Source of the DNA: Sminthopsis crassicaudata
Lineage: Eukaryota
DNA length: 64,000 nucleotides
Assembly: GCF_048593235.1 (NCBI RefSeq)
Contig: NC_133619.1
Span: 655,419,744 to 655,483,743, forward strand
Reading direction: 5' to 3'
This document shows positions 924 to 42,525 of the stretch, piece by piece (position 1 is the stretch's first letter; each line of letters starts with the position of its first letter). The position numbers and the translations under genes were made by a program. The notes below the pieces were generated by a model. The model made no database searches. It was not told the origin of the DNA and saw only the letters and a program-made list of their open reading frames with translations.

Positions 924-2460
924 TCAGCACATCTTGCCCCTCTCATTAACTTCAGAAAAGTAAAGGAGAATCAGGAGGAGATATGTCTTGTAGGCCAGCA
1001 CTGTAGGCCAGGGGAGGTGCCCATTTTGGGGAGATCCGGCCGGCCAATCGCAGCTACGGTGATCATAGCGAGGCTGTCTCCATTGTCTGCGGTGGTGAGT
1101 ATGGGGGGGAGCGGCGGGAGAACTGGAGGAGGCCTCCAAAGCTGGGGAAGTTTCGGGGAGGGAGGGAAGGGTTCAATGGGTGGGCTCTTTTTCAACTTTG
1201 GGGAAGTCATTGCCAAGGATCCCCAGGGACGTGGCCTTCTTTGCTTTGAAAAGGCGATGGTCGCCCCGGGGGTTTGTTCCCCTCTTGAGATCTCAGCCTG
1301 TAAGTCTGCTCACGTGCTTCATCCCCCCTTTTTCTCTTTCCCAGGCCAAGGGCAAGAACGGAGAATGCCCCTGGTGGCTGCCGCCTTCACAGGAGGCGCA
1401 GGATGCGGAGACACAGCGGCCACCTAGGTGCGGAGCCGAGGGAGCTGGGAGGGCAGCGGGAGTGGGAAGGGAGACCCGAAGGCCGAGACCCGCGAGCGTT
1501 CTTCCCCGGCTCCGAACTCGAAGACGGGGTGGCCGCGGCAGGATCCGGTCAAGTACAAAGCAGGGCCGCTGAAGGGCTTTCGTAGGGAGGGGCCCTTGCG
1601 CCTCCTTCCTCCCCGCGGTTCGTCCCAGCACAATGGCAAGATTTGGAATCGGCCTTTCGACGTCCCGAGCTCGCAGCCGAGCGCCAGAGGTGCCACGGGA
1701 GGCCTTGCCTCGGGGCTGTACGGGAGGAGCTGGAGCTGTGGCCCAGCTGCTCTTCCTATCCGGACCTTGGCCGGAGCTGGGGAAGGCCCGGCTCCACTTC
1801 CCGATGCCTGGGGCATTGCCCAGCCTGCCAGTGAACGCACGGATTCTAGAGGCTGACAGACCTCCAAGGGCAGGGGGCAAGATGCTGAGGAAAACCGTCG
1901 TGCCCGCACAAGGCAGAAGGGAAGGCGGCCCTGCCCGGGAACTTGGCAGAAGGGCAAAGTCCTTGGCGATGGGCTTTTGCGAGTTGCCTTGAGAGCGGAG
2001 CCACATTTTCGGACTTTTCCCTTCCCCTTTCAGGCTTTGCTTTGCTTGCCAGAAAAAGCCATTGTTTATCTGAGATGCCTCCGGGAGGGGAGGGGAGGGG
2101 GCACGAGTGGGGGAATGCTGGCAGAAATTGTGCCACACTTCAATAAAATGTCCTTGCAAAAACTCTCCTGGCTTTGTTCGTGTTACTCTTTCGCGTATTC
2201 TTGGTTTCATTCTGGCTAGGGATGAGCTTTCCCATCTGTGTCACTTCCACATACTACAATGGGACAGCAGGTGGCACTGGCAACCAAGGGAAGACTATCC
2301 TGAGGGGGGGGGGGGAAGGTAGGATTTTTGAGTAGCTCCTGTCCCACGTGCCAGGCCCCAACTCCACGGAGATTTCAGAGCTTGGCAAAAAAGACAATGC
2401 ATTCAGGGAGGACCCAGCCTTGACTGACCTCTTAACTGCAGTGCACCTCACTTTCCTCAT
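924..2460 (-). other. CpG-rich island / possible decayed intronless gene, unassigned
   Basis: GC- and CpG-rich between ~1000 and 2100 against AT-rich flanks. Longest ORF is 305 aa (1293..2210, minus). No protein family confidently recognised in any frame. Confidence 0.35.
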
Positions 2461-6000: not shown

Positions 6001-6477
6001 CCTTGTTTCTTGATGCCATGACTGAACTACATGGACCTTGGGGAAGCTGAGAATAATTTGACCCTATCCATCAAGCAGGTAATTGTTTAGTCTAATAATC
6101 AGAAAAGGTGAAGCTGAGCTTTGGTTGCATTTCCCAGATTTGCTGGCATGCAGCTATCAGACCTGCAGGAATCTGTGTGAACATTTGATATGGAAGGTCT
6201 CTTCACTGTCTACAAGACAGCAGTCCTTCATTCATTGAGACCTTGGAACTTGACAAATTCTTAGATGACTGCTGAGATAAAGTAGTCAAGATAAATTGTT
6301 TCTGGAGAGTAAATAATTGGATTGTCCTTAAGAAGTACAGCAGCATTGGTTAACTGGATTAGGTGCTAAGGATACAACTAAATGGAGAGGGGAAAGAAAG
6401 CCCAAGGGTGTGGAGAGAAGGGGATTTACAACTTCAAAATGTAATTAGGGCAGGGCAAGAGATCACTGGAGGAAAAG

Positions 6478-6584
6478 TATATAAAAGGCCAGTACCAGCT
6501 CATTTTCAGTGATTCCAGCTCAAAGAAGAGATTTCCACTGCCACTGTGTTCCTGTCTGAGAAACCTCTTGGGAGGACATCAAAG
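6478..6584 (+). promoter_or_regulatory. TATA box, Inr-like site and non-coding exon 1 of the unassigned gene
   Basis: TATATAAAA at 6478-6486, TCATTTT at ~6500, donor AAAG|GTAAGC at 6584/6585. Confidence 0.55.
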
Positions 6585-7898
6585 GTAAGCCATCGGATCA
6601 ATTTTTTCCTTTTGGGGAAATGTCTCTTTCTTTGCCTTCTTTGAAAATGGAGAGATATCTGAAGAAGTGAAGAAAGACATAATCTATTTGGAGAACTCAG
6701 AATCCTCTACCAGAGGAAATGCCTACTGGGTTAGACTCAGTGCTTGAGACTCTCAGTGCTCTCTGAGAATTCTTTCATATAGAGAAAGTCAACTTTCCCA
6801 TCCTACCTAAACTTTAGTTTGCTTCTCTATCAAAATATGGCATTTCCTACTTGTAGCATGCTCATTCCCACAGTCTTGTGGTGTCAAATATGCCAAGAGA
6901 AATAACTCTAGGTCAAGAGATGAGCAGAATGATGACAGGAGACCCAGGTCATTAAAGGGAGCAGCTTCTGGATTTGTCTTTTCTTTTAATTAGATGTGGA
7001 GGATTTGGACTAGCTGCCATAGGTATTCACAGAGAATTCCTGGGAAAGCTCCTCAACCAGGCCCCAAAGAATTTTAGAGTAATAGTGTACTTTCTTTGAC
7101 CTCAGCAGCCAGTCAGCCATCAGTATAAAGCAATTAGCCAATATAAAAGTCTATATAGAGCCCTTCACATGTATTAGCCTGTGGGCTAAGTCAAGGGGCT
7201 TTCTATGAAGAAGCAACCAAGAAGACTGGAAGGCAGAATCAGACTCCTCGGAGGAGACTTAGGAGAAAACAGTGTAACCGGGCAGAGTTTATACAAGATT
7301 GGGAGGGAATGGGCCTGTGTGCATACTAGGAGCCAACACATGGAGAGAGAATGAAAACTGGAGAAGGGGACATGTTCCACAGAAGGAAGGGTTGGAATCT
7401 GGGATGGCTGTAGAGAGGTTTGTCCTGCCTTGCAGAAAGTCTACAAGAGACAGACAGAGAGACAGAGACAGACAGATTGGGGAGCACATCAAATGGATTC
7501 AAGAGGAAGAAAATAGGCAGAGACCATAATCCAATGGCTTTAGGATCAACCAATTAAGAAGGAGTTCCTGGTCCTGAGCTGGGGAAAGAGAGAGGACATG
7601 GTAAGAAAAGCTGAAGGAGAGCGCTGGAAATGTGGAATACAGCTGCTATGGGCAGTGAGATTATGATTCCAGATATAGAGTTGGAAAAGGTCTGATCAGT
7701 ACTTACCAAATTTAAAGCAATTAAAAATTAACACTATTTTCCCATTTCACCAGGATATTGTCCTGTAATTTTGTTCATAGTTACACATGACCCTTACACG
7801 TAGCACACATGACCCTAACCTCTAATGAAAATCCATTTCCTTCTTCATTCTTTTCAGTCATAAGCTCTAGGAAAAGACACTTTCTCAACCTGGCAGAG

Positions 7899-9022
7899 AT
7901 GTTTCACTATTTCAAAAGACAAACTGTAGAAAGCAGTGACAACATTGTCGAAGAGGGAGAAAGGAAAGAACTGCAGAAAGAGAAGGAATCAGGAAACCAA
8001 TCTAAAGACAATCAAGACTTCTCCTCAGGCTCCATGTTGGCCATAGATGCCGCCATGGCAGTTACAAGGGATGCAGAGAACAGTGGAAGTGAACAGAGCT
8101 CTGAGGAAGAATTCATCTTACTTCCTATGCCACCCCAGTTTGTCCCAGGACATTTGGAATATTTGGAAGATGCCCTGATGGGGCCTGACCTCCCAACTGC
8201 TTACCGGTTTTATGCCAGTGATGACAACAGCAGTGCTGACACTGGAGCTAACCATTCTGATGAAAGCAATGAGAACCATGACAGCAACAGTGATCAAAGT
8301 GACAATCACTGCCATAATGATGATGGCAATGATGTGTACAACAATGACTATGGTGAGTATGGAGAGTGGGTAATGAGAAGAACTTAAGGAGGTCTCAAAA
8401 TGTTGGGACTCTGCTCCCATGGGAGCAAAATGAGTGGGAGATTGAACCTTGTAGGGAGCATCAAAAGGATTAGTGTGGAAGTTGTTCCAAAGTGTTAATA
8501 TTGACAATTTCCTCATTTTCAAATATGGTTTTTCCTACATAATTTTGTTCACTTATTGAGATTATTTGAATGTACACTCTCCTGACATAATCCATGCTCC
8601 ATGTTCCATTTTTCTCTTTCACAGTCATCCTCCAGAAACAAGAAATGGACAGGGGTGACATCCATCTTGACCACCTGCAGAGTAAGTTAGAAGACAACTG
8701 CACAAAGGTGGTTGAAGGAAGTGGAAAACTTGCAGAAGGGAAAGAGGAGCAAGAAGAAGAGCACAAAGAGTCCAAAGCAAGAAGTCAATGGAAAGATGAG
8801 GAACACCCACTTGCAGGCTCCACTTTGGTTGATGGTGTCCCCATGTCTACTTCAAAAGACCCAGAAATAGGTGTTACAAATGAACAGAGCTCTAATGAAA
8901 TAATAGTTGAGGTTCAAGATAATCTTTCCTTGATTCCCAATCCTGATCTTGTTGAAAAGGTGGAGGCAGATCCCTGCCCCAGATGCTGTTCCTGTTTTTG
9001 CTTTCCCTGTTTTCCTTTGTAG
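7899..9022 (+). CDS. Unassigned spliced acidic protein, ~283 aa; coding exons 7899-8352 and 8625-9022
   Basis: Acceptor ttcttcattcttttcag|7858; ATG 7899; donor TATG|GTGAGT at 8352/8353; acceptor tttttctctttcacag|8625; the phase-1 join is in frame with ORF 8594..9022; AATAAA at 9587; internal protein repeat across the two exons. Confidence 0.6.
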
Positions 9023-9413
9023 AGCTGAGGAACACCTGGTGACAGTTTCCAATGCCAGCAGGAAAGCCCAGAGAGCCAACATGCCCTCAGGTTCTAGTGC
9101 CTGCCAGTGACTTGCAGTGATGTTATCAAGGACTTGATGGTGACAACAATTTGTCCCTTGACTTCTGGGGTTTTTCTCAAAATCTCTCCTTTTTTTCTTC
9201 TTTTCTTTTTCTCAAGTGCCAAGTTGGACAAAAGACAGTCTTGACACTAAAGAAGCCAGTCTCAATCCACCTGCTTGCCCTTTCTCTTTTTGAGGCAAGT
9301 TGTAATAGGACTAAGATTTCAATTTCAGACCCATCTCAAAACGATAATAGTGAAAGTGACATTTTCAATGAAGAGATATAAGAAGACTTGCCAAGCCAAT
9401 TTGCAGATATAGG

Positions 9414-9415
<2 letters not shown>

Positions 9416-9449
<34 letters not shown>
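9416..9449 (+). repeat. (TG)n microsatellite
   Basis: Uninterrupted TG run. Confidence 0.95.
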
Positions 9450-9452
<3 letters not shown>

Positions 9453-9579
9453 ATGTGTTACTAAGTTTTTTTTGACTTTTCCCTTTCACTGTTTTTATAA
9501 CACTCATTTTGAATCTGAAATGTGTGTCTGGGAGAAAATGAGGAATGAATGCTATTTAAAATTATGGTGATGGAGAAAA

Positions 9580-10110
9580 ACATTTCAATAAAAGCTATTT
9601 TTGCTAACTGTATCTTTGTGGTTAGTGCTTCAGTGTTTTCTTTCTATGTTTCTGACGGTTTTCTAAATAGGCATATTCAGTCTCTGTTAATTTGGAAGTA
9701 ATTCCAACATATTGATATTATATTAACATTTTTGTCATTTGTATATATGGCTTTACTTACATAATTTTGATCCCTTGTTGAGACCAGTTGACCATTCTCA
9801 CATGGAGAATGGGACAGTAGGATTATGAGTCAAGGAAAGACTATCCTGAAGCAGAGGTTATAAGGTTTAATTAATTTAGATATGTCAGTGTTATACTCTG
9901 GAGGCTTACTGCCACTTCCAAGAGATTAAGAAGGCATTCTTCAGGGTGTGAGACATTTGCCAGTTCTATGACTCTGGGGCATTCCCATGAGTGTTTTCTG
10001 CCTTTCTCTGGTGTAGTTCTGATATCTACCTCAAAGATTTTGTTTGTTTGTTTTTTTGATCAAATAAATTAATACCTTTGAATGCTTAGCACAATGGAAG
10101 GCACTGGTAA
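9580..10110 (+). repeat. Diverged paralog of 14150-14700 and of the window start
   Basis: Shared gttaatttggaagtaattccaa...gaccattctcacatggagaatg...aatggaaggcactggtaactatta. Confidence 0.9.
9587..9592 (+). terminator. Polyadenylation signal of the unassigned gene
   Basis: AATAAA followed by T/GT-rich sequence; also present in the paralog at ~14158. Confidence 0.5.
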
Positions 10111-10459
10111 CTATTAATTTGTGCCAAGTTTATAAGAATACAGATCATTCCCCAGTTAATAAATGGTCAAAGAATATCAATAGACACTTTTCAGATGACA
10201 AAATTGAAGCCATTTATACTCATATAAAAATGCTCAAAATCATTATTTATCATCAAAATGTAAATTAAAAACAATTCTGGGTGTCACTTCGCACCTGTCA
10301 GATTGGCTAAAATGACATGAAAAGATAGTAATAATCCTAATATTTTAGAGTATCATCCTCAATATTGTACCTATCATGTACCCATTTTATTCTAATTTTG
10401 GTATGAGGTGTGAAATATGTCTATGCATATTCTAGATATAATATATGTATGTGGAACTG

Positions 10460-13949: not shown

Positions 13950-14145
13950 TAATTCAGAGTTTTAGCAAAGTTGCAGGATACAAAATGAATCCACATAAAT
14001 CCTCAGCATTTTTATACATTACCAACACAATCCAACAGCAAGAGATACAAAGAGAAATTCCATTCCAAATAATGGTCGATAGTATAAAATATTTGGGAAT
14101 ATATCTACCAAAGGAGAGTCAGGAATTATATGAGCAAAATTACGA
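13950..14145 (+). mobile_element. Short LINE-1 ORF2 fragment, sense
   Basis: ORF 13985..14194: NPHKSSAFLYITN...IKYLGIYLPKESQELYEQNY. Confidence 0.9.
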
Positions 14146-14149
14146 AAAA

Positions 14150-15198
14150 AGCATTTCAATAAAATCTATTTTTTCAAATATTATCATTCTCTGAGGTTAC
14201 TGCTTCAGCATTTTTCTGTATATATTTCTGAGAGTATGCTAAATAGGTATAGTCAATCCATGTTAATTTGGAAGTAATTCCAAATTATTGATACTATATT
14301 AACATTTCCTTCATTTGTGCATATGGCTTTTACTTACATAATTGTGATCCCATGTTGAGACCAATTGACCATTCTCACATGGAGAATGAGAGTAGGACTA
14401 AGAGTCAAGGAAAGACTATCCTGAAACAGAGTTTAAAGGGTTTATTTAACCCAAATTTAGATATGTCAGTGTTACACTCTGGATGTTTGCTGCCACTTGC
14501 TTCACTGAGATTAAGAAAGCATTCTTCAGGGTGTGAGACATTTGCCAGTTCTGTGACTCTGGGGCATTCCCATGACTGTTTTCTGCCTTTTTCTGGTATA
14601 GTTCTGACGTCTACCTCAAAGGTTTTGTTTGTTTGTTTGTTTTCGATCAAATAAGTTAATACCGTTGAATGCTTAGCACAGTGGAAGGCACTGGTGACTA
14701 TTAATTTTTGCTTAATTAATACTTCCTTCTTTCCTTTATTCTTTATTGCTAGATTTCCTCCCACATTCCCTCCTACCTTTCTTTTCAGAGTAAAATCAGG
14801 AATTACTTATTCAAAGGAAAAATCATTATTATTCGATTTCCCCCCCCCCCCCCAATCTAGCCTATCTTGATAAAGAACCGTGTTATTTTCATGCATAGTT
14901 TAAAATTTCAGCTCCTGACAATCCTAGAAAACTTGTGAGGACTCCAAATTTGACTGGAATTTCCAAGTGTAATTTCCAGTTTTGGGGGAAGTACGTTTTT
15001 ATTAATCCATTCGAAAAATATTATTTGTCTATGTGGATTATTTAAAAATTCATTATTTCAACCATCGAATGACGGTTTCATTGCTCGTGCATTGGAAATC
15101 CTTATTACATACAATTCCAAGGGTGTTTCAAAGGGAACAGCATCTATTTAAGTTCTCCTTCTTTTGGACAATTTAAAATTTCTTCCTAAATCTCTTAG
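14150..15198 (+). repeat. Segmental duplication copy (matches 9580-10110 and 1-808)
   Basis: Direct sequence comparison. Confidence 0.93.
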
Positions 15199-16217
15199 GG
15201 TGTTACATAAATTTTTTCAGGTTTTTTGTTTTTTTTCTGATATCATCCTGCTTATCATTTCTTACAGCACAATAATGTTCCATTACAATCATGTTTGTTT
15301 AGTCATTCCAATTGATGAAAAACTCAATTTTAACGAACAACTATTTTGCACCATGGGGTGGTTGGAAGTGAATGTCCCAAAGATGAAAGGTTCCCAAGAT
15401 AATACTGAGGAGGTCTCCTCTTTGACCCTTAGTTGCCTTCTCTTTAAAATGATATTTGACCAGATCAATTAACTCATTCAAAACCAAGTATTTATCGCCT
15501 ACTATGTAGCAGACATTCTTGTAACTCCATGAACCAGAATCTAGTGAAGGGTTTTTTAGAAGGGTCATTACATAAAGATTATATTATTATATTAATAAAA
15601 ATTGTTGAACTGATTATATAAAAGGGTCACAAGAGCAAATGTGATAGGAGAAAACAAAGGAGAAATGTAGATAAAAGAGTTCTCCCGAAAATGTGAGGAA
15701 AGAGAAAGCACTCCCAATTAGGGACATCCAAGAAAACTTCATGGTAGAGGTGGGTCTCGAAAAATTTCAACAAGACAAGGGAAAGAGACAGGCAAAGGGC
15801 CGGCTTCTGTGAGTAGAATGATCACCATCCTACTGGACTCTGGTCCAATTCTAACACTCTTCGCTAGATTCTCATTTGATTCAATCCAACAACACTTCTC
15901 GCGTTACTAACGTTAGACCAAATCAACCAGTGTTCCAGAAGCCACGGTGAATTGAAATAATGGTGGATTGTCTAGACATCCAAAAGACATAAACTGAAAT
16001 TCGGACCTCAGACACTGATAAGTCCCTTCTGTTATTTCTTCTGCTTCATTTTTCTTTACCTGTAAAGTGAAGGCATCTAAAGTGCTTTCCATCTGAAAAT
16101 CAGCAAGGATAATCATCTAGTGTCTGGCCCCAAGGGGACTTACATTCTACTGGGGGACAACATCTCACAGATAAATGTGGTCCCAAAAATCAAAGAAGAG
16201 AATATGTGCTTTTGAGA

Positions 16218-21365: not shown

Positions 21366-22025
21366 GGGCAACATTTCATTCATGCATCCGCATGAATGTG
21401 TTTTTAAAGATTCCCAACCCGCCCCCCAACCCAAGCCAAGCCAAGACAAAGAAACGTGTTTTTTAAAAGTCTGCCGATTCTCATCCGTTCTCCTTCGGGT
21501 TTTGTGGTTGTTTGGTTTTGTTTTTCGTTTTTTTGGTTTCGTTTCGTTTCCTTTGGTTTTTCTCTAGAGGGTCTTTCAGCCGGAGTCCTTGGGAATGGGC
21601 CTGCATCTCCGCCCGGCTGAGAACTGGTCCTTGGACCCCATCGCTGTGACTGTGCACAAAGCTCTGTTTGTGCTCACTCTGCTGGCGCCGGCTCACGGAA
21701 GCCTTTCCCAGGGTTTCCCCAATCTGTTTGTCCCTTGTAGAACCCAGTGCCCTTTCAACCGAGGCACGGAGCACGACTGGAGCTGCCCAACTCAGGGCCC
21801 GTTCCTCCATTCCAATGCTCTGCNNNNNNNNNNNNNNNNNNNNNNNNNNNNNNNNNNNNNNNNNNNNNNNNNNNNNNNNNNNNNNNNNNNNNNNNNNNNN
21901 NNNNNNNNNNNNNNNNNNNNNNNNNNNNNNNNNNNNNNNNNNNNNNNNNNNNNNNNNNNNNNNNNNNNNNNNNNNNNNNNNNNNNNNNNNNNNNNNNNNN
22001 TTTTCTATTTTGCTTTTTATTTGTT

Positions 22026-23845
22026 TGGGTACAACCACGTCCTCCTTCTCCTTCTCTTCCACCATCTCCTCCTCTCTTCCTTATCTCGCTTGTGCACACC
22101 TTGACACAGACTAGGAGGGGAGTGGGTCTCCACTGTATACATATATTGGAGAAGGATGAGGTGTGGTACCTAGCCCTGTGCACCTGGACAAGCTGCCTCT
22201 TTCTCCCTCCTCCTCTTCCTCCTGTTCCTCCTCCTCCACTATCTCTTCCTTCTCCACCATCTCCTGCAGGAGGAGGAGATGGTGGAAAAGGAGGAGTAAG
22301 AGAAGGAGGAGAAGGAGGAAGTGAGGAGGAGGAGGAGGAGGAAGAGGAGGAGGATGGTGGAGAATTAGGAGATGATGGAGGAAAAGGATGAGGTGATGGT
22401 ACCTAGCTCTGTGCACCTGGACAAGCTGCCTCTTTCTTCCTCCTCCTCTTCCTCCTGTTCCTCCTCCTCCACTATCTCCTGCAGGAGGAGGAGATGGTGG
22501 AAAAANNNNNNNNNNNNNNNNNNNNNNNNNNNNNNNNNNNNNNNNNNNNNNNNNNNNNNNNNNNNNNNNNNNNNNNNNNNNNNNNNNNNNNNNNNNNNNN
22601 NNNNNNNNNNNNNNNNNNNNNNNNNNNNNNNNNNNNNNNNNNNNNNNNNNNNNNNNNNNNNNNNNNNNNNNNNNNNNNNNNNNNNTTGTCCAGGTGCACA
22701 GAGCTAGGTACCATCACCTCATCCTTTTCCTCCACACATCTCCTCCTCTACCTCCTCCTCCTCCTCCTCACCCACCATCTCCTCTACCATCACCTCATCC
22801 TTCTCCTCCACTATCTCCTCCTTTTTCCACTATCTCCTCCACCTCCTTCTTCAACACCTCCTCCTTCTCTTCACCATCTGCTCCTTCTCCACCATCTCCT
22901 CCTCTTCTTCCTCCTCCTCTACCTCCTCCTCCTCCTTCTCCACCATCTCCTCCTCCTCTTCCTCCCCCATGTCCTTCTCACTCCTCCTCCTCCACCATCT
23001 CCTCCACTTCCTTCTTCAACACCTCCTCCTCTTCCACCATCTGCTCCTTCGTCCACCATCTCCTTCTGTTCTTCCTCTTCTCCTTCTCCGCCTCCTCCTT
23101 GACCATCTCTTCTCCTCCCTCCATGATCTCGTTCTCCTCCTCCTTCTCCTCTCCTCGTCCTCCATCACCTCCTTGGTTCTCTACCATCTCCACCCCCTTC
23201 TCCTTTTCCTCCACCATCTCCTCCTCCTCCTCCTGACCTCCTCCTCCTCCTCCTCCTCCTCCTCCTCCTAATCTTTCTTCATTCTCCCTCATTTACCATC
23301 TCCTCCTCCTCACTTCTCCATGTCCTTGTCCTCCTCCACCTCCTCCTCTTCCACCTCCTCCTCCTCCTCCTCTTCCCTCTTCCTCCTCCTCCCCTCATTT
23401 TCCTCCACCATCTTCTCCATCTCCACCATCTCCTCCTTCTCCACCATCTCTTCTAGAAGGAAGATGGTGGAGGAGAAGGATGAGGTGGTGGTACCTAGCT
23501 CTGTGCACCTGGACAAGCTGCCTCTTTCTCCCTCCTCCTCCTCCTCCTCTTCCCTCCTGCTCCTCCTCTTCCACCATCTCCTCCACCACCACCTCTACCT
23601 TCTCCTCCACAATCTCCTCTTTTTCCTCCTCCTCTATCACCTCTTCCTTCTCCACCATCTCCTCCTCCTCCTGTTAAACATCCTCCTCCTTCTCTTCCTC
23701 CATTTCCTCCTAATCCTCCTTCTCTTCCTCCTCCTCCTCCTCCTCCTCCTCCTCCTCCTCCTCCTCCTCCTCCTCTCCTCTTCTTTCTCCTCCTCTTTCT
23801 CCTCCACTATCCCCTCCTTTTCCACCATCTCCTCCACCTCCTGCT
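22026..23845. repeat. Compound TCC/GGA minisatellite with a ~50-bp spacer motif and strand inversions
   Basis: Spacer ggatgaggtg.tggtacctagctctgtgcacctggacaagctgcctctttct at ~22155, ~22386, ~23478; inverted at 22686 and 16835. Confidence 0.9.
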
Positions 23846-23989
23846 CTACAAAGCTGAATTATCTTAGTATCATCGGAAAAGATCTAGATGATCTCAAAGA
23901 TAAATTTTACTTTTAACACCATGATCCTATTCTGGACAGTCCCTGTCCTCGGAGCCTTGCATTCTGCTCTTTAGTCCACAGACTTTATT

Positions 23990-28545: not shown

Positions 28546-29322
28546 CAAGATGATTGGAATGGGCCAGAACTCCAGAACTTCTGGAGAAGTGTACTTGAAA
28601 CAAAGATTCTTCCAAAAGGAGTTAACATTCAGAAGAAGATGGATATCTAGTTTAGCATGGTGATAAATAGTTCTCTGGTTCAGTATGATTGAATTAATCT
28701 TATGACATATAATGGTTTCTTGGTGATATAATGATAGGCTTATACTGAGTATGATGAATGGATTAAATTGTAATAGAGTATTTAAGAGGTCACACAATGC
28801 AGTGGCCTCTCAGTCAGAGAGGTCACAGAACAACTGCCTCTCAGTCTCCTTGTATCATCCTCTCACAAGAGATGTATTCCAGCAGCCACTGTCAGGTGAC
28901 TCCAGTGTATTCCAACAAATGATGAATTTTGATTTATTTATTTTCCATGATTAGCAAGTTATGCATAAATGACTGACAGATTCACAAGCAACTATCCTTT
29001 CTTGATACCATGTTAGCCCATAAATTCAAAAGAATAATAAAATGAAAGAAATGTTTTGGGGCTACTTCCAAATCAGGATTCATCTATGTTGACTTTCCAT
29101 TTGCCCTTTAACTGATCCCAATCAAATCCCATAATACCCACAAAACCCTTCCATTGTTTATCAAAATTGAGGGAAACTACTGCTGCCCTCTAACCTTTAC
29201 CTCACAGTCTAGTGGGCCTTTCCAGAGAGAAGACATCACCAGTATGGTTGATTCTAGAGAAAGACATGCAGGCTGGGGGCAGCAAGATCAGTCCCTTTCC
29301 AGAAAGGGAAGCAAGAAGACAG
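28546..29322 (+). repeat. Segmental duplication copy of 2749-3535
   Basis: Direct sequence comparison. Confidence 0.93.
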
Positions 29323-29334
29323 TACCTTCAAGTA

Positions 29335-31230
29335 TACTTCTCCAAAGTCCAGCCCGCTCCATCCGCTGTCTTTGCCTGGGAGGAGCAGTCCCCCGCGCCT
29401 GAGAGGAGCAGTCCCCAGGCCCGGTCTTTATTTGTGGCTGAGAGGGCCCTGGGCCTTGGTTCTCGGTGGGTGTCTCTTCTTGACATCCTGGGACTGCTGC
29501 ACCTCTCCCACGCTTTCTCTTCTGACATCACCCTCTTGCTCCCGCTTGTCCCGTGTCCCATCCCCTCGGGGTGTGGGCGAGAGTGGGGTTGGAAAAGCAC
29601 CCGAGCCATGGAGGTGGAGATCCTTCCCACAGCCAAGAAGATAGATAAGATAATGCAGAACAAGAACGCGGCCGGGGCACTGGATTTACTAAAGGAACTT
29701 CAAGACGTTCCCATGACTCTGGAATTATTGAGGTCCACAAAAATTGGAATATCGGTAAATACTGTAGGAAGCAGAGCACAGATGAAGAAGTCACATCATT
29801 AGCCAAGTCTCTCGTCACACGCTGGAAGAAGTCGGTCTCTGGGCCCTCCAAGACTGAAGAAACCAAAAAAGGGACCTGCTCACTCTTCCCAATGCAGGCC
29901 TGAGGCAAAACGAGAAAGGAGCTGCAGGAGCAAAGCAAAGGAAGAGACAAAGGCTTCTGATTCCTTCATTAAAGCTTTCCCCCGGGCACCAAGCACTTCA
30001 GATTCGGTTCCCATCAAGTGCCGGGAGTTGCTTGCTGCAGCCCTCAGAACTGGAGGTGACTACTTCGCTATTGGCGCCGATGTAGAAGAACTGGGCGCTC
30101 AGATTGAGGAAGCTGCATATCAGGAGATACGGAACAGGGACATGAAGTATCAAAACAGGCTACGAAGGAGAACAGCAAATCTCAAGGATGCAAAGAAGCC
30201 AAACTTAAGGAAAAACGTACTGTGTGGGAACATACCTCCAGATTCCTTTGCTAGAATGACTGCAGTCGAAATGGCTAGTGAAGAACTTAAAGAGATGCGC
30301 AGAAACCTGACCAAAGAAGCTATTAGAATACATCAAATGGCCCGGACGGGTGGGACCCAAACGGACCTATTTCGATGTGGCAAATGTAACAAGAAGAACG
30401 GTACCTAGACCCAGTTTCACACCCTAAGTCCTTATGAACCTATGACAACATATGTTTTCTGTAACGAATGTGGAAATAGATGGAAGTTGGTTTAGAAGAA
30501 GAAATTCGCCAGATACCTGGACACTTACAAAGGAAGATTTTGAATTAGCTTTAAAAACTAAGTCAAGAATCTAGTTTCCCTGCAAATGAGATTTTGTAAA
30601 GCAGAAAAAATCCTCGGGGTTAGTTTTTGTTTTTGTTTTTGTATTCTCTTGAAAACATTCTTAGAGAGTCAGTGTTAGGTCAGATAGGGTATGGTGTATG
30701 GTGTATGTTTAAAACTTTTTTTTCCCATTTTGATAACGAAGTCAACATTAAAGTTTTATCAATTTCAACTGTTGGTAACTTGTTTCTTTTTCTTCCAAAT
30801 GGGAAATCAACTTTAACTTTTTTTTTTTTAATCTGAAACATACACAAAAACGATTTTGCTTCTCTGTTCATGTGAAAGTGGAATTTGCATTTGTTTCTGT
30901 ACTGCCATGTTCCTACTTTATTAAAGGAGAAGAAAGATTAGTGTAATTTTGGGATTGCCAAATGTAGTGTGGTAAAGAAATCATATTTGGACAGCTGATC
31001 TAGTTTGTAGATACCATTTTCAACGAGTCTCTCCCTTTGATCATAAGGACTGTTAATAAGCCTTAGTGATTAGATATCCTTTTGCATCTGTGACTACCTG
31101 TGACCAATTGCAATTCTTGTACTTCTTTACTCTAAATTACTGCTCTTAATAGATCTTCCATGGGGGAAATTGATTTTAAATAAATTGTTTGTTAAAAGTG
31201 ATCAATTGTCCTTTTTTCTTTGTTTGATAG
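29335..31230 (+). pseudogene. TCEA1: TCEA1 (TFIIS) processed pseudogene; CDS homology 29608-30495 plus UTRs
   Basis: [27 protein letters not shown]; [25 protein letters not shown]; [41 protein letters not shown]; EPMTT.V.CNECGNRWK. No introns; frameshift near 29770 and a premature TAG at 30406. Confidence 0.95.
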
Positions 31231-38005: not shown

Positions 38006-39909
38006 TTAATGAGGTTTCTGTCCAATGTGGATTTTCTCATGTTTACCAAGACTTTGGCGCCGTGTGAAAGTCTTTCCACAGTCACTACATTTGTAAAGCT
38101 TCTCCCCAATGTGGATTTTATCATGTGCTATGAGACAATTTTTGTATTTGAAAGTCTTTCCACAACACTTACACTCATAAGTCTTCTCTGCAGTGCGGAT
38201 TGTCTGATGGTAAGTAAGACTGCTGCGACTTGTGAAAGTCTTTCCACATTCATTACATTCATAAGGCTTCTCTCCAGTGTGGATTCTCTTATGGATAGCA
38301 ACATGGGAGCGTTGGGTAAAAGCCTTTCCACACTCATTACACTCATAAGGCTTCTCTCCAGTGTGGATTCTCTGATGTGCATCAAGGGTGGAGCGCTTTG
38401 TGAAAGCCTTTCCACATTCATTACAGTCATAAGGCTTCTCTCCAGTGTGGATTCTCTGATGTGCATCAAGGGAGGAGCGCTTTGTGAAAGCCTTTCCACA
38501 GTCATTACACTCATAAGGCTTCTCTCCAGTGTGGATTCTCTGATGTGCATCAAGGGAGGAGCGCTTTGTGAAAGCCTTTCCACATTCATTACAGTCATAA
38601 GGCTTCTCTCCAGTGTGCATTCTCTGATGGACAACAAGACAGGAGGGATATATGAAAGCCTTTCCACATTCATTACATTCATTAGGCTTTTCTCCAATGT
38701 GGATTCTCTGATGTGCATCAAAGTAGGAATGGTTTGTGAAAGCCTTTCCACAGTAATTACATTCATAAGGCTTCTCTCCAGTGTGGGTTCTCTTATGGAT
38801 AGCAACATGTGAGCGTTGTGTAAAAGTCTTTCCACAGTCATTACATGCATAAGGCTTCTCTCCAGTGTGGATTCTCTGATGGATATCAAGCTTGAAACGT
38901 TGTGTAAAAGCCTTTCCACAGTCATGACATTCAAAAGGCTTCACTCCAGTGTGGATTCTCTGATGTTCACAAAGATTGTAACTCCGTATGAAAGCCTTTC
39001 CACATACATTACATTTATAAGGTTTCTCTCCAGTGTGCCTTCTCTGATGGTTCGTAAGATTGGAATGAGATGTGAAAGTCTTTTCACATTTGTCACATTC
39101 ATAAGGCTTCTCTCCAGTATGGGTTCTCTTATGTGCTTTAAGATAGGATTGCTTTGTGAAAGCCTTTCCACATTCATTACATTCATAAGGCTTCTCTCCA
39201 GTATGGGTTCTCTTATGTGCTTTAAGATAGGATTGCTTTGTGAAAGCCTTTCCACATTCATTACATTCATAAGGCTTCTCTCCAGCGTGGATTCTCTGAT
39301 GTTCATGAAGAGTGTATCTCCGTGTGAAAGTCTTTCCACAGTCATTACATTCAAAAGGCTTCTCTCCAGTGTGGACTCTCTGATGGACAGCAAGACTGGA
39401 GTGACATGTAAAAGTCTTTCCACATTCATTACATAAATAAGGCTTCTCTCCAGTGTGCATTCTCTGATGTTGAGCCAAGTTGGAATAACATTGGAAATCC
39501 TTTCCACATTGATTACATTTGTAACATTGTTTTGCTGTGTGAATCCTCTCATGTTTAACAGGAGAAGATCTCTCTCTCAAAGTCTTTCCATGTTTCTTAC
39601 ATTCATAAGATTTCTCTCCAGCATGGATTCTTTGATGCTTGACAAGGGAAGAGAGTGCAGTAAAAGCTTTATCACATTCATGACACTCAGGGGTCTTCTC
39701 TTCAGGATGTATATTCTTATCTTTAGCAACATGGGAACTATTTCTTAAAGCTTTTTTGTGTATATTCCATTCACAAAGTTCCTCTCCAATGTGGTTTCTT
39801 TTGTGCTTAGCAAAAACAGCCCTGTATTCACTATATTGAAAAAGGTCTTTCCACGAGATAATTTTCAGATTTGCACTTATCTCCTTCATATCAAACTGTG
39901 TCTCTGAAT
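38006..39909 (-). CDS. KRAB zinc-finger gene, last coding exon (20 C2H2 fingers, 2 degenerate)
   Basis: Acceptor tttgtttctttcag|ATTCAGAG at 39909; open frame with repeated TGEKPY-C..C...H...H units to the stop at 38006. Confidence 0.97.
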
Positions 39910-42525
39910 CTGAAAGAAACAAACACACATGGATAAATATACCTTCTAATAATGGCTGATAATAAATCATTGACTTTTAATTTCTCCAGGCAAAAAGTTT
40001 TCAAACTGAAATGGACAGATTCATTTTTAAATACTATTAGGTCACACCAATAAAGTGATTCAATTAACAGAGTTCCACACACAATACAATGACATTGGAC
40101 CCCCACAACAAAGCTGAGACAAAGGCAAGTTGAAGGTTCTCATAATTTAGAAACCAGGCTATAAGCTCTGAATGTCTGAGCAACCTGATCCAAATCCCTG
40201 CAGCAGAGATTTAAACTGGAACCTGGTAAAGTAAGCTTCTCAGTCTATTATACTACAAAGTTGTTCTCCATTTTTCTTCCAATGCTGTCTTTGAAATTCA
40301 ATCTCAGGCAGCACCTAGCTGTGCACCCCTGGGAATATGCTTCTTTGTCTCAGTTTTGCTGTAGAGTGAAGCTAATAATTGTACCCACTTACCCAAGTTG
40401 TTGTGAGCATCAAAAGAGGTAATACCTATAAAACTCTTGGCCCACAGTAGGTACAATTAACTATTATCTTTGTTACTATGATTTTGATTCTCTCCATCTC
40501 AACTTTTCCTTCATAAACTTCCCTTCCCCTCTCTCTTTATATGCATGTCTGTTGAACATGATGTATTTCCATAACCCCCCCAAAAAAACCAACCAACTAA
40601 ACAAACAAACAAAAACACTTTCCTTTACCTGGATTAGCTAAGAATAAGTTTCATAAGCTGTTTTTTATTCTCAAACCATCTCCAAGTTTTTATGCTGGAT
40701 TTAAAACTTCTTGACAGCATCTCTTTGCATACCCAGGACTTTATGCAATGAACAGAACAGGTGCTTAATCGGTTTATTGAGTGATTAGTTCACATTACCC
40801 AGGGCTGGTCACATCACCTAAACCTATCTCAGTGCTTGCATGCTGGGCCCTCTGAAGTGCCAAATGTATGTTTCCATTTCTTTCTCTTTCCTTCTCCCTC
40901 TCACCTATGGATAAATCCTATAGTGAAGATAACAAGGGCCTAGGGCTCCTGGTGCTGTTATGAAATAACCAGGAGTCTTTCCCTCCATATCCCTAACCTA
41001 AGGGAAGCTGTCAGTTATGGAGTGAGTGACTTGGATTTAAGTGAGGGAGAGCTGCCCAAAGTCACCGGCCTCACTTTCCCACACACTGTATCCTTTGGCC
41101 AAGTACAGATCAGGATTGCTGCAGATAGCTCTGGATGCAAATGGCCAGGGGAGTCCTGGGCCTGGTTAAGGTAAGTTTCTTGTGACTGAGGCTGCACTCA
41201 TCCAGTGACAAAGAGCAATGAAGGCAAAGAATCTCCTCTCTCACCTGGGCTAAAAAAATCTCAATAAATAAAAGGGAATGAATGACTCTGGGAAGAAGCT
41301 CAGGGTTTCTGGCCAAGGCAGAAATGTTTGTGATTTACACTCAATCTAAGTCAATGAGGACCCAAACAAAGAACAATTGGGGTTTAGCAAGGGACCTATG
41401 GGTGGTCAATGAGATTCAGACTGATTTTGGTTTATAATAGAACTGATAAGGTTTGTTCCTTAAGAAAGGAATCAGAGCAGGTAGGTGGCACAGTAGATAG
41501 AATACCAGACCTGAAGTCAAGAGGAACCTAGTTCAAATCTGTCCTTGGACNNNNNNNNNNNNNNNNNNNNNNNNNNNNNNNNNNNNNNNNNNNNNNNNNN
41601 NNNNNNNNNNNNNNNNNNNNNNNNNNNNNNNNNNNNNNNNNNNNNNNNNNNNNNNNNNNNNNNNNNNNNNNNNNNNNNNNNNNNNNCAGTGGTGAGGAAA
41701 GGGGGAGAGAAATGCTTTTAAAAGCATCTGTAGGTAAGAGAATATGATATCAAAGGTGGACAGAAGGAAGCAAGGAAAGAAGGAAATAGGCAAGTAAGGA
41801 AGAAGAGAAAGGAGAGTGAAGTGAGGAAGGGAGAGAAGGAGGCAAGAACAGTCATCCAAGTGATTGATTCCAGCTTGTGCCCAGCTTTACTCAGAGGATG
41901 TTATCTGTCCTATCTCTCTATGCTTATCTGTAGCCTGCAAAGGATGGGGGGTGGGGAGGAGAAGTGCACAACACAGAACAAAAGGAAAACTACAGGAAAG
42001 CAAAAAGTGAAGGATGGTTCTGAATACAATACCTTTCATTTATGGTTTATGTAAATTTATTGTTACAGATTTTGAATCCTCCCTTATGTTCTGCTGAACA
42101 TAAAATATTATTTTTAAATTATTCTTTTTCTCTCTTTTTCTAGTTTGTTTTTAGTTTTAAATAAATATAAAAAAAGTAAAAAAAAAAAATGCTTTTTGGC
42201 TTAAGGAAGGCCTAAGAAAAGTCATATTAGACAGCCTGAGCCCTCTTTATTTGGTTGTATATAGTTTGATGGCTCCAAATTTCCAACAAAGACTTCCACT
42301 GGGATCCTTGATTCTTCATTATTAGGGAACTGAAAGGCCTTGGAGTACAAGGCCCTCATTTTACACATGAAGATACTGAGGTTCAGAGATTCAGAGAGAT
42401 GCTAAGGATCTTACTACTACAAGAGTCTGAAAAGGGATTCCAAACCACTTTTCTTGTCCCCATGCCCATCACATGAAGAAGCCTCCTGGGATAGCAGCCT
42501 GCACTTCAGCTTGCAACTCACTCAC

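Follow-up and report, generated by a model that had tools for sequence, protein, structure and literature searches.

An intact member of a marsupial gene family with a probable origin in the N-terminal region of WDR70

WDR70 (GAD-1; Wdr70 in S. pombe) is a substrate receptor of the cullin-RING ubiquitin ligase CRL4 and is a chain in four human spliceosome C-complex entries (6ZYM, 7A5P, 8I0W, and 9XTT). It belongs to the DDB1- and CUL4-associated factors (DCAFs), with a DWD motif in its WD40 domain that binds DDB1 (PMC4844679). A fragment comprising residues 112-654 is enough for reconstituted CRL4 E3 activity (PMC10688980), and coiled-coil segments in the N-terminal region contribute to RNF20/40 binding (PMC10491287). 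Here we describe a gene at positions 6478-9610 of a 64,000-nucleotide stretch of the genome of the dunnart Sminthopsis crassicaudata (RefSeq assembly GCF_048593235.1, contig NC_133619.1, forward-strand positions 655,419,744 to 655,483,743; hereafter the window), the product of which resembles the disordered front end of WDR70. Based on comparisons of sequence, we consider it probable that the locus carries an intact gene of a multigene family that is confined to marsupials and was born from a partial duplicate of WDR70.

The window product is like WDR70 in that its residues 1-100 are collinear with human residues 42-145 and a second module aligns to the same stretch. Unlike WDR70, which is 654 amino acids (aa) long, it has about 283 aa and is without a WD40 propeller, a DWD/DDB1-binding motif, and the C-terminal region. 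Its module is duplicated, and it has gained a cysteine-rich tail and a new promoter exon, in a family that exists in many copies and evolves fast.

Other families of small, acidic, disordered proteins that are tandemly duplicated, taxonomically restricted, and fast-evolving include GAGE/PAGE, VCX, and BEX/TCEAL, which share these properties with the marsupial family and are eutherian or primate. No sequence relationship to these families turned up, no comparison aimed at them having been made. A further likeness, in acidic, serine-rich, disordered composition, is to ACRC/GCNA, whose name NCBI and UniRef have lent to the koala members; Pfam detected neither a SprT-like protease nor a zinc-finger domain, and none of the searches matched a GCNA protein.

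Relationship to WDR70

The preliminary description of the locus, made from the sequence without database searches, recognised no homologue for the product. That claim does not stand, as the locus has marsupial relatives and its product matches the N-terminal region of WDR70 (E 2e-7 for the single sequence and 2.3e-13 for a profile). Coding exons 2 and 3 were searched separately, with the Antechinus protein P0002 serving as a full-length stand-in. In a phmmer search against PDB sequences, residues 1-100 encoded by window exon 2 aligned to human WDR70 42-145 with 34.9 bits, placing Met1 on Met42, and WDR70 was the only match below an E value of 0.01. Anchors are spread along the whole length of this alignment and include MF, R..VE.S, EKE, SS.S, and RD..S.SEQSS as well as an acidic run before a hydrophobic residue, P.PP..V, E+.++GP, and LP. 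The more diverse of two family profiles (A3), compared with all PDB chain sequences, matched one protein, human WDR70, over residues 42-164 (53 bits, profile positions 2-125). The less diverse profile (A2) scored WDR70 at only E 0.0078 even against the PDB, which explains why a search of 1.84 billion representative proteins with A2 missed it. Module B of the tammar protein P0019 (residues 165-270) aligned to WDR70 39-149 at E 4e-4, and window exon 3 had WDR70 39-111 as its top PDB match at E 0.3. The region homologous to WDR70 39-149 is an N-terminal and disordered one. By eye and unscored, the translated leader before the start codon (..RKRHFLNLAE-MF) also resembles the part of WDR70 shown before Met42 (..LEA-MF). 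Separately, a PDB match to HopU1 (E 0.025) was dismissed as a short chance similarity.

An alternative is that the product is an orphan disordered protein unrelated to WDR70, whose match arises from acidic, serine-rich composition and which carries motifs of its own (PAM2-like PABP-binding, PPxY, or LIR-like F-x-x-L). The HMMER bias term on the WDR70 match, at 6.8-8.2 bits, would fit such an origin, but WDR70 stands apart in score from every other acidic or serine-rich PDB chain, and composition alone therefore does not explain the match. Moreover, some 105 residues align collinearly, with several distinct anchors and with Met placed on Met, and two modules and three independent queries match the same WDR70 stretch. 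With regard to motifs, two devil (Sarcophilus) copies have weak PAM2 matches at LAPEFVPG (E 0.011-0.18), and in koala, bilby, and Gracilinanus LPPAY formally qualifies as a PPxY; against this, the PAM2 likeness falls short of the Pfam threshold and is seen in just 2 of 15 members, and several members have broken F-x-x-[LIV] and PPxY patterns. Nor does the family retain the Asn/Ser and Ala positions that are usual in PAM2. Taken together, we regard an orphan origin as very unlikely. The PAM2 (PF07145) reading of EFVPG was itself rejected, as the window exons gave no match, the two members that did reached 12 bits against a cutoff of 20, and the likeness is not common to WDR70. LIR-like F-x-x-[LIV], beta-TrCP-like SGS.xS, and dileucine readings were likewise set aside, none being conserved across members.

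The clear match to a known protein concerns the disordered front end of WDR70 and not its WD40 domain, which argues for a derived partial paralogue rather than a WDR70 orthologue. Pfam gave no WD40 beta-propeller match in either exon or in 15 family members, even at E up to 10, and the open reading frame (ORF) ends at 9022. The DWD (WDxR) motif belongs to the WD40 domain and is absent from the window product; without the WD40/DWD part, the product cannot be a CRL4 substrate receptor. It could be argued that the locus belongs to a longer gene, namely a complete paralogue of WDR70 with WD40 exons further downstream, and that the exon 3 stop is used in one isoform only. The downstream domain scan took only ORFs of at least 130 aa and would have missed short WD40 exons, yet in five species the NCBI models terminate at the homologous codon and have no WD40, and exon 3 is followed by a 565-nucleotide (nt) untranslated region (UTR) and a poly(A) signal. 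We give this longer gene scarcely any credence.

In this probable origin of the family from WDR70, an ancestral copy of the segment ~39-149 lost its upstream start, with translation now beginning at the equivalent of Met42. The retained segment is the disordered N-terminal region ahead of the WD40 propeller, and its tandem duplication within the gene produced module A (exon 2) and module B (exon 3). Several copies of the gene also arose in each marsupial lineage, and a non-coding first exon with a TATA promoter was gained. The founding event may have been a DNA-level partial duplication or a retrocopy.

In the family alignment, the repeated module starts with a charged, helix-prone stretch (..R.TVE.S...VE.GE.KELQKEKES..), continues with the serine-rich SGS..L....M.VSSDPE.SGSE.SS.EE, and ends in a strongly conserved core, F..LP.PPQFVPGHLEDLEDAL.CPDLPPAYQT. 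Module A, the part homologous to human WDR70 42-145, comprises residues 1-100 of the product and lies at 7899-8198 (this and all other features of the gene are on the forward strand). Its most conserved core, F-ILLPMPPQFVPGHLEYLEDALMGPDLPT at 8112-8198, appears in a unit listing across 8 species and in the A3 alignment and contains, in a structural model of P0002, a short helix at HLEYLED. Behind module A, exon 2 encodes a D/S/N/H-rich tail, and window residues 72-151 present the core F..LP.PPQFVPGHLE.LEDAL..PDLP together with this SDNH.H..NDVY tail. In the +1 frame of this exon 2 tail, an open 53-aa ORF at 8212-8373 (+) is very hydrophobic and is the start frame of the devil isoform X2 (P0006) and of the metaclust sequence P0004; this alternative-frame ORF is probably an annotation artefact of low-complexity codons.

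Module B, at 8675-8965 in exon 3, is a degenerate second WDR70-like copy. It is complete in koala, tammar, and bilby, and the dasyurids have lost about 11 residues of its PP.F.PG core. Window exon 2 and exon 3 match each other by BLASTP at E 0.002, koala module B matches window module A at E 2e-8, and the DNA alignment of the two exons shows collinear blocks that include the same CAG|TCAT acceptor. This likeness and the common acceptor indicate that exon 3 is an old tandem duplicate of exon 2. Two modules are found in most members, three in devil P0005/P0021 and in P0001, and up to six in one bilby protein. The product ends in a cysteine cluster, CPRCCSCFCFPCFPL, with 6 Cys in 15 residues (8975-9019). 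Antechinus and two devil copies also have this cluster, devil P0005 reads it in another frame, and koala, tammar, and bilby have weaker Cys motifs. Of the whole protein, the C-terminal tail is the least constrained part.

Gene structure and the marsupial family

The locus was confirmed to hold a real-looking, intact three-exon gene, and the TATA box, donors, acceptors, phase-1 splice, AATAAA, and ~283-aa D/E/N/S-rich product of the preliminary description were all recovered from the sequence at the coordinates it had claimed. The TATA box (TATATAAAA, read from the sequence) occupies 6478-6486, and transcription would start at ~6508, about 25-30 nt downstream. Exon 1 is non-coding and would extend from this start to 6584 (6508-6584), finishing at the donor AAG|GTAAGC, whose GT is at 6585. 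A polypyrimidine tract and CAG form the first acceptor, which ends at 7857, and exon 2 (7858-8352) begins with a 41-nt leader. Exon 1 and this leader are without an ATG, the first ATG of the predicted mRNA being at 7899, and codons 1-151 follow up to the phase-1 donor ATG|GTGAGT after 8352. Intron 2 (8353-8624; 272 nt, GTGAGT...CACAG) closes with an acceptor whose last base is 8624 and interrupts a Val codon (G+TC); the coding part of exon 3 (8625-9022) comprises the rest of this codon, 131 further codons, and the TAG stop at 9020-9022. The 3' UTR (9023-9610) contains a (GT)21 microsatellite at 9416-9458 and an AATAAA at 9587-9592, the sole canonical poly(A) signal from the stop to 9700. The predicted mRNA is about 1.56 kb long and encodes 151 + 1 + 131 = 283 aa, rich in S/D/E/N and with a net charge of about -40.

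The end of the 3' UTR is repeated within the window. A block at 9573-10124, made up of the last ~40 nt of the UTR including AATAAA and about 500 nt of flank, recurs at 14144-14711 and 1-328 with 85-95% identity, the repeat regions listed for it being 9573-10124, 14144-15201, and 1-810. It is either the tail of further tandem family copies or an interspersed repeat from which the poly(A) signal derives.

That the gene is complete and spliced, as first described, is supported by the intact signals, by the exon 2/exon 3 junction common to NCBI models of Antechinus and Sarcophilus, and by a koala model that ends at the exon 1 donor. Because those Antechinus and Sarcophilus models have the same junction (..NNDN-V-ILQKQEMD..), the gene model reflects more than chance. 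The phase-1 intron follows ..NDVY.N.. and the next exon opens with V-[IK]-LQ, and the residues across 8352|8625 match those of P0002, P0003, P0005, P0007, and P0019. P0012 and P0015, which are without this splice, read on into GEYG.., the translated start of intron 2. The N-terminal segment of the koala isoform model P0009 aligns to window 6429-6590, a statistically weak alignment with an exact boundary, since it ends with ..DIKG precisely at the exon 1 donor. Residues 32-38 of this model (RKHIKGQ) align at the TATA box, which would be consistent with a conserved TATAAAAGGCCAG. In addition, P0013, a 213-aa ORF on a 1664-nt Logan contig, crosses the exon 2/exon 3 junction without an intron, which suggests that it represents the spliced transcript of a tammar-like relative.

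Two same-species DNA contigs from one run (X3) depart from the window arrangement. One joins 6584 to exon 2 (at 7881) with 23 unlike letters between, a weak joint with 29 letters on its short side, and the other replaces 96 nt of exon 2 (7998/8095) by 12 nt, a net difference of 84 nt that is in frame. These joints, each in a single contig, hint at and are compatible with a retrocopy and with paralogues or in-frame length variants elsewhere in the species.

Word-based searches returned four relatives with the exon 2 ORF as query and nine with Antechinus LOC127557628 (P0002). Among 1.84 billion representative proteins, the A2 profile matched only 15, and a word-based search with the A3 profile at E up to 1 returned the same set only. 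In total, word and profile searches bring the family to about 20 predicted proteins. Every match with a named source is from a marsupial, namely Antechinus, Sarcophilus, koala, tammar, bilby, the didelphid Gracilinanus, or dunnart, and four matches are without an organism on record (two metaclust and three Logan sequences, one of these clustered with a tammar protein). The preliminary suggestion of a lineage-specific gene thus stands as far as restriction to marsupials is concerned. It does not extend to restriction to one genus, as the range runs from didelphid to dasyurid and at least seven other species have predicted members of this multi-copy family.

Similarity to the predicted members is full-length, with E values of 1e-80 to 1e-12 and 66-82% identity, and tblastn with marsupial homologues covered both coding exons, including 7899-8348 at 66-76% identity. 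Named members are LOC127557628 (Antechinus flavipes), LOC116422683/4 and LOC116423046 (Sarcophilus), LOC110219759/61 (koala), LOC141495916 and LOC141505606 (bilby), LOC123239883 (Gracilinanus), and XP_072463235 (tammar). The window gene has in common with them the N-terminus MFHYFKRQTVE.., the core motif, the D/S/N-rich DNH.H..NDVY tail, the exon 2/exon 3 junction, and the second module. It also has the cysteine cluster in common with the dasyurid members, to which its identity is 66-76%, while the named members differ from it in module number and in C-terminal reading frame. All members are annotated as 'uncharacterized' or named from their composition ('acidic repeat-containing protein-like', 'slrA-like'), and the dunnart member among the matches (P0016) is a diverged copy that gene prediction fused to a vomeronasal receptor (V2R) model.

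Pfam returned nothing above threshold for both exons and 15 family members, and an ESM Atlas search gave no usable lead; weak Pfam matches to DUF4746, Peptidase_S49_N, Anophelin, and similar entries were discarded as noise. An AlphaFold model of Antechinus P0002, built with the family alignment, indicates disorder (mean predicted local distance difference test score, pLDDT, of 50.7), with only three short helices, at HLEYLED, at 163-181, and in the Antechinus-specific tail. Literature searches on the LOC identifiers and on WDR70 with marsupials found nothing relevant. The members were already predicted; by the literature searched, recognition of the likely WDR70 origin would be new.

Constraint and possible function

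In a tree of exon 2, the dasyurids form a clade with 100/99 support, within which the window gene, Antechinus P0002, and devil P0003 are a polytomy about 0.28 changes per site apart. This is fast for species so close. The ORF and the core motif nevertheless persist from the didelphid to the dasyurids, which disfavours simple decay.

We tentatively propose, as the likeliest though still rather doubtful role inferred from homology, that the product presents at least two WDR70 N-terminal docking motifs and competes with or re-routes WDR70 partners, acting as a WD40-less competitor or adaptor. The conserved peptide motif F..LP.PPQFVPGHLEDLEDAL.CPDLPP would bind partners of the matching part of WDR70, and these partners would be uncoupled from CRL4 or the spliceosome. 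A further possibility is S-acylation of the cysteine cluster, which would tether the product to membranes. Fast sequence change, changes in module number, and lineage-specific duplication together suggest a reproductive or conflict-type role. More speculatively, and in our judgement improbably, this 'headless' WDR70 family, repeatedly amplified in marsupials as arrays of the N-terminal docking module that lack the ubiquitin-ligase/WD40 part, might consist of decoys or antagonists in a genetic conflict (e.g. against a viral or selfish factor targeting WDR70), or of a germline brake on WDR70-dependent H2B ubiquitination, DNA-end resection, or splicing. Either role would explain how the overall rate can be near-neutral and a motif of 20 residues almost frozen.

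Several observations weigh against an active gene with such an origin and role. None of the sequencing runs with the locus is on record as RNA, and in four same-species runs the introns and flanks are covered as evenly as the exons, from which these runs are taken to be DNA. Coding-sequence variants within the species, classified by codon position indexed across the exon 2/exon 3 junction, comprise 7 non-synonymous and 3 synonymous changes; this is a small sample that mixes alleles with paralogues, and the ratio looks like weak constraint. Relatives read the C-terminal tail in three different frames, and the cysteine cluster may therefore be dispensable. In place of the PPxY-like LPPAY of other marsupials, the window gene has LPTAY and Antechinus has LPIAS. 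Finally, the WDR70 comparison used the human sequence only, and homology is the single line of evidence behind the competitor model.

The predominance of non-synonymous variants would also be expected if the window copy were a duplicate that is silent or in decay and has stayed intact by chance in a young region rich in duplications, with function residing in other members of the family. Consistent with this, the window abounds in rearranged duplicates and retrogene copies, of which some are broken, and a truncated fragment of the family is found 5 kb upstream; in addition, the protein collection does not contain the window protein, although it does contain another RefSeq protein from the dunnart. 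Against it, the TATA box, two canonical introns, the first-AUG start, the full ORF, and the single AATAAA are all intact, and the end branch of the window gene (0.11) is no longer than those of Antechinus and the devil (0.11-0.14). We consider a silent copy unlikely and retain an intact member of a WDR70-derived family as the probable interpretation.

Under this WDR70-derived interpretation, an apparent orphan would become a dated, traceable gene birth by partial duplication, in which a disordered docking segment of an essential nuclear protein was freed from its catalytic scaffold, multiplied in gene and genome, and retained over about 80 million years in a single branch of the mammals. The frozen motif PP.FVPG.LEDLEDAL..PDLPP, which corresponds to WDR70 PPKMVGKPVNFMEEDILGPLPP, would mark the residues most likely to matter in the poorly understood N-terminal region of WDR70, and the marsupial family would offer a natural dominant-negative candidate for the function of that region. 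More generally, misleading automated names would be corrected, including 'slrA-like', 'acidic repeat-containing protein-like', and the fusion with a vomeronasal receptor model.

Surrounding sequence

The truncated fragment upstream was identified by tblastn at 1020-2150 (+) as a diverged, GC-rich, 5'-truncated copy of the same WDR70-derived family. It is closest to Sarcophilus P0017 (57% identity, E 5e-27) and to the V2R-fused dunnart model P0016 (E 2e-11), and it also matches P0011 (E 4e-8). The fragment has an exon-2-like end with the same GTGAGTATGG donor at 1095, an exon-3-like part at 1343-1810, and an AATAAA at 2143. It is without the 5' module and carries an in-frame stop near 1583, and is probably a pseudogene.

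Further into the window, dense diverged direct and inverted repeats (65-82% identity) occupy 22200-23850, flanked by masked N runs at 21824-22000 and 22506-22685, and ORFs at 22494-23102 and 23320-23916 have no Pfam match. A 196-aa ORF at 29212-29799 (+) matches the TFIIS/Med26 N-terminal helical-bundle domain (PF08711, E 4.8e-7) and may be another retrogene-type copy of a nuclear factor. On the reverse strand, a 654-aa ORF at 38006-39970 (-) encodes 17 C2H2 zinc fingers with heavy internal repetition and is the finger exon of a ZNF gene.

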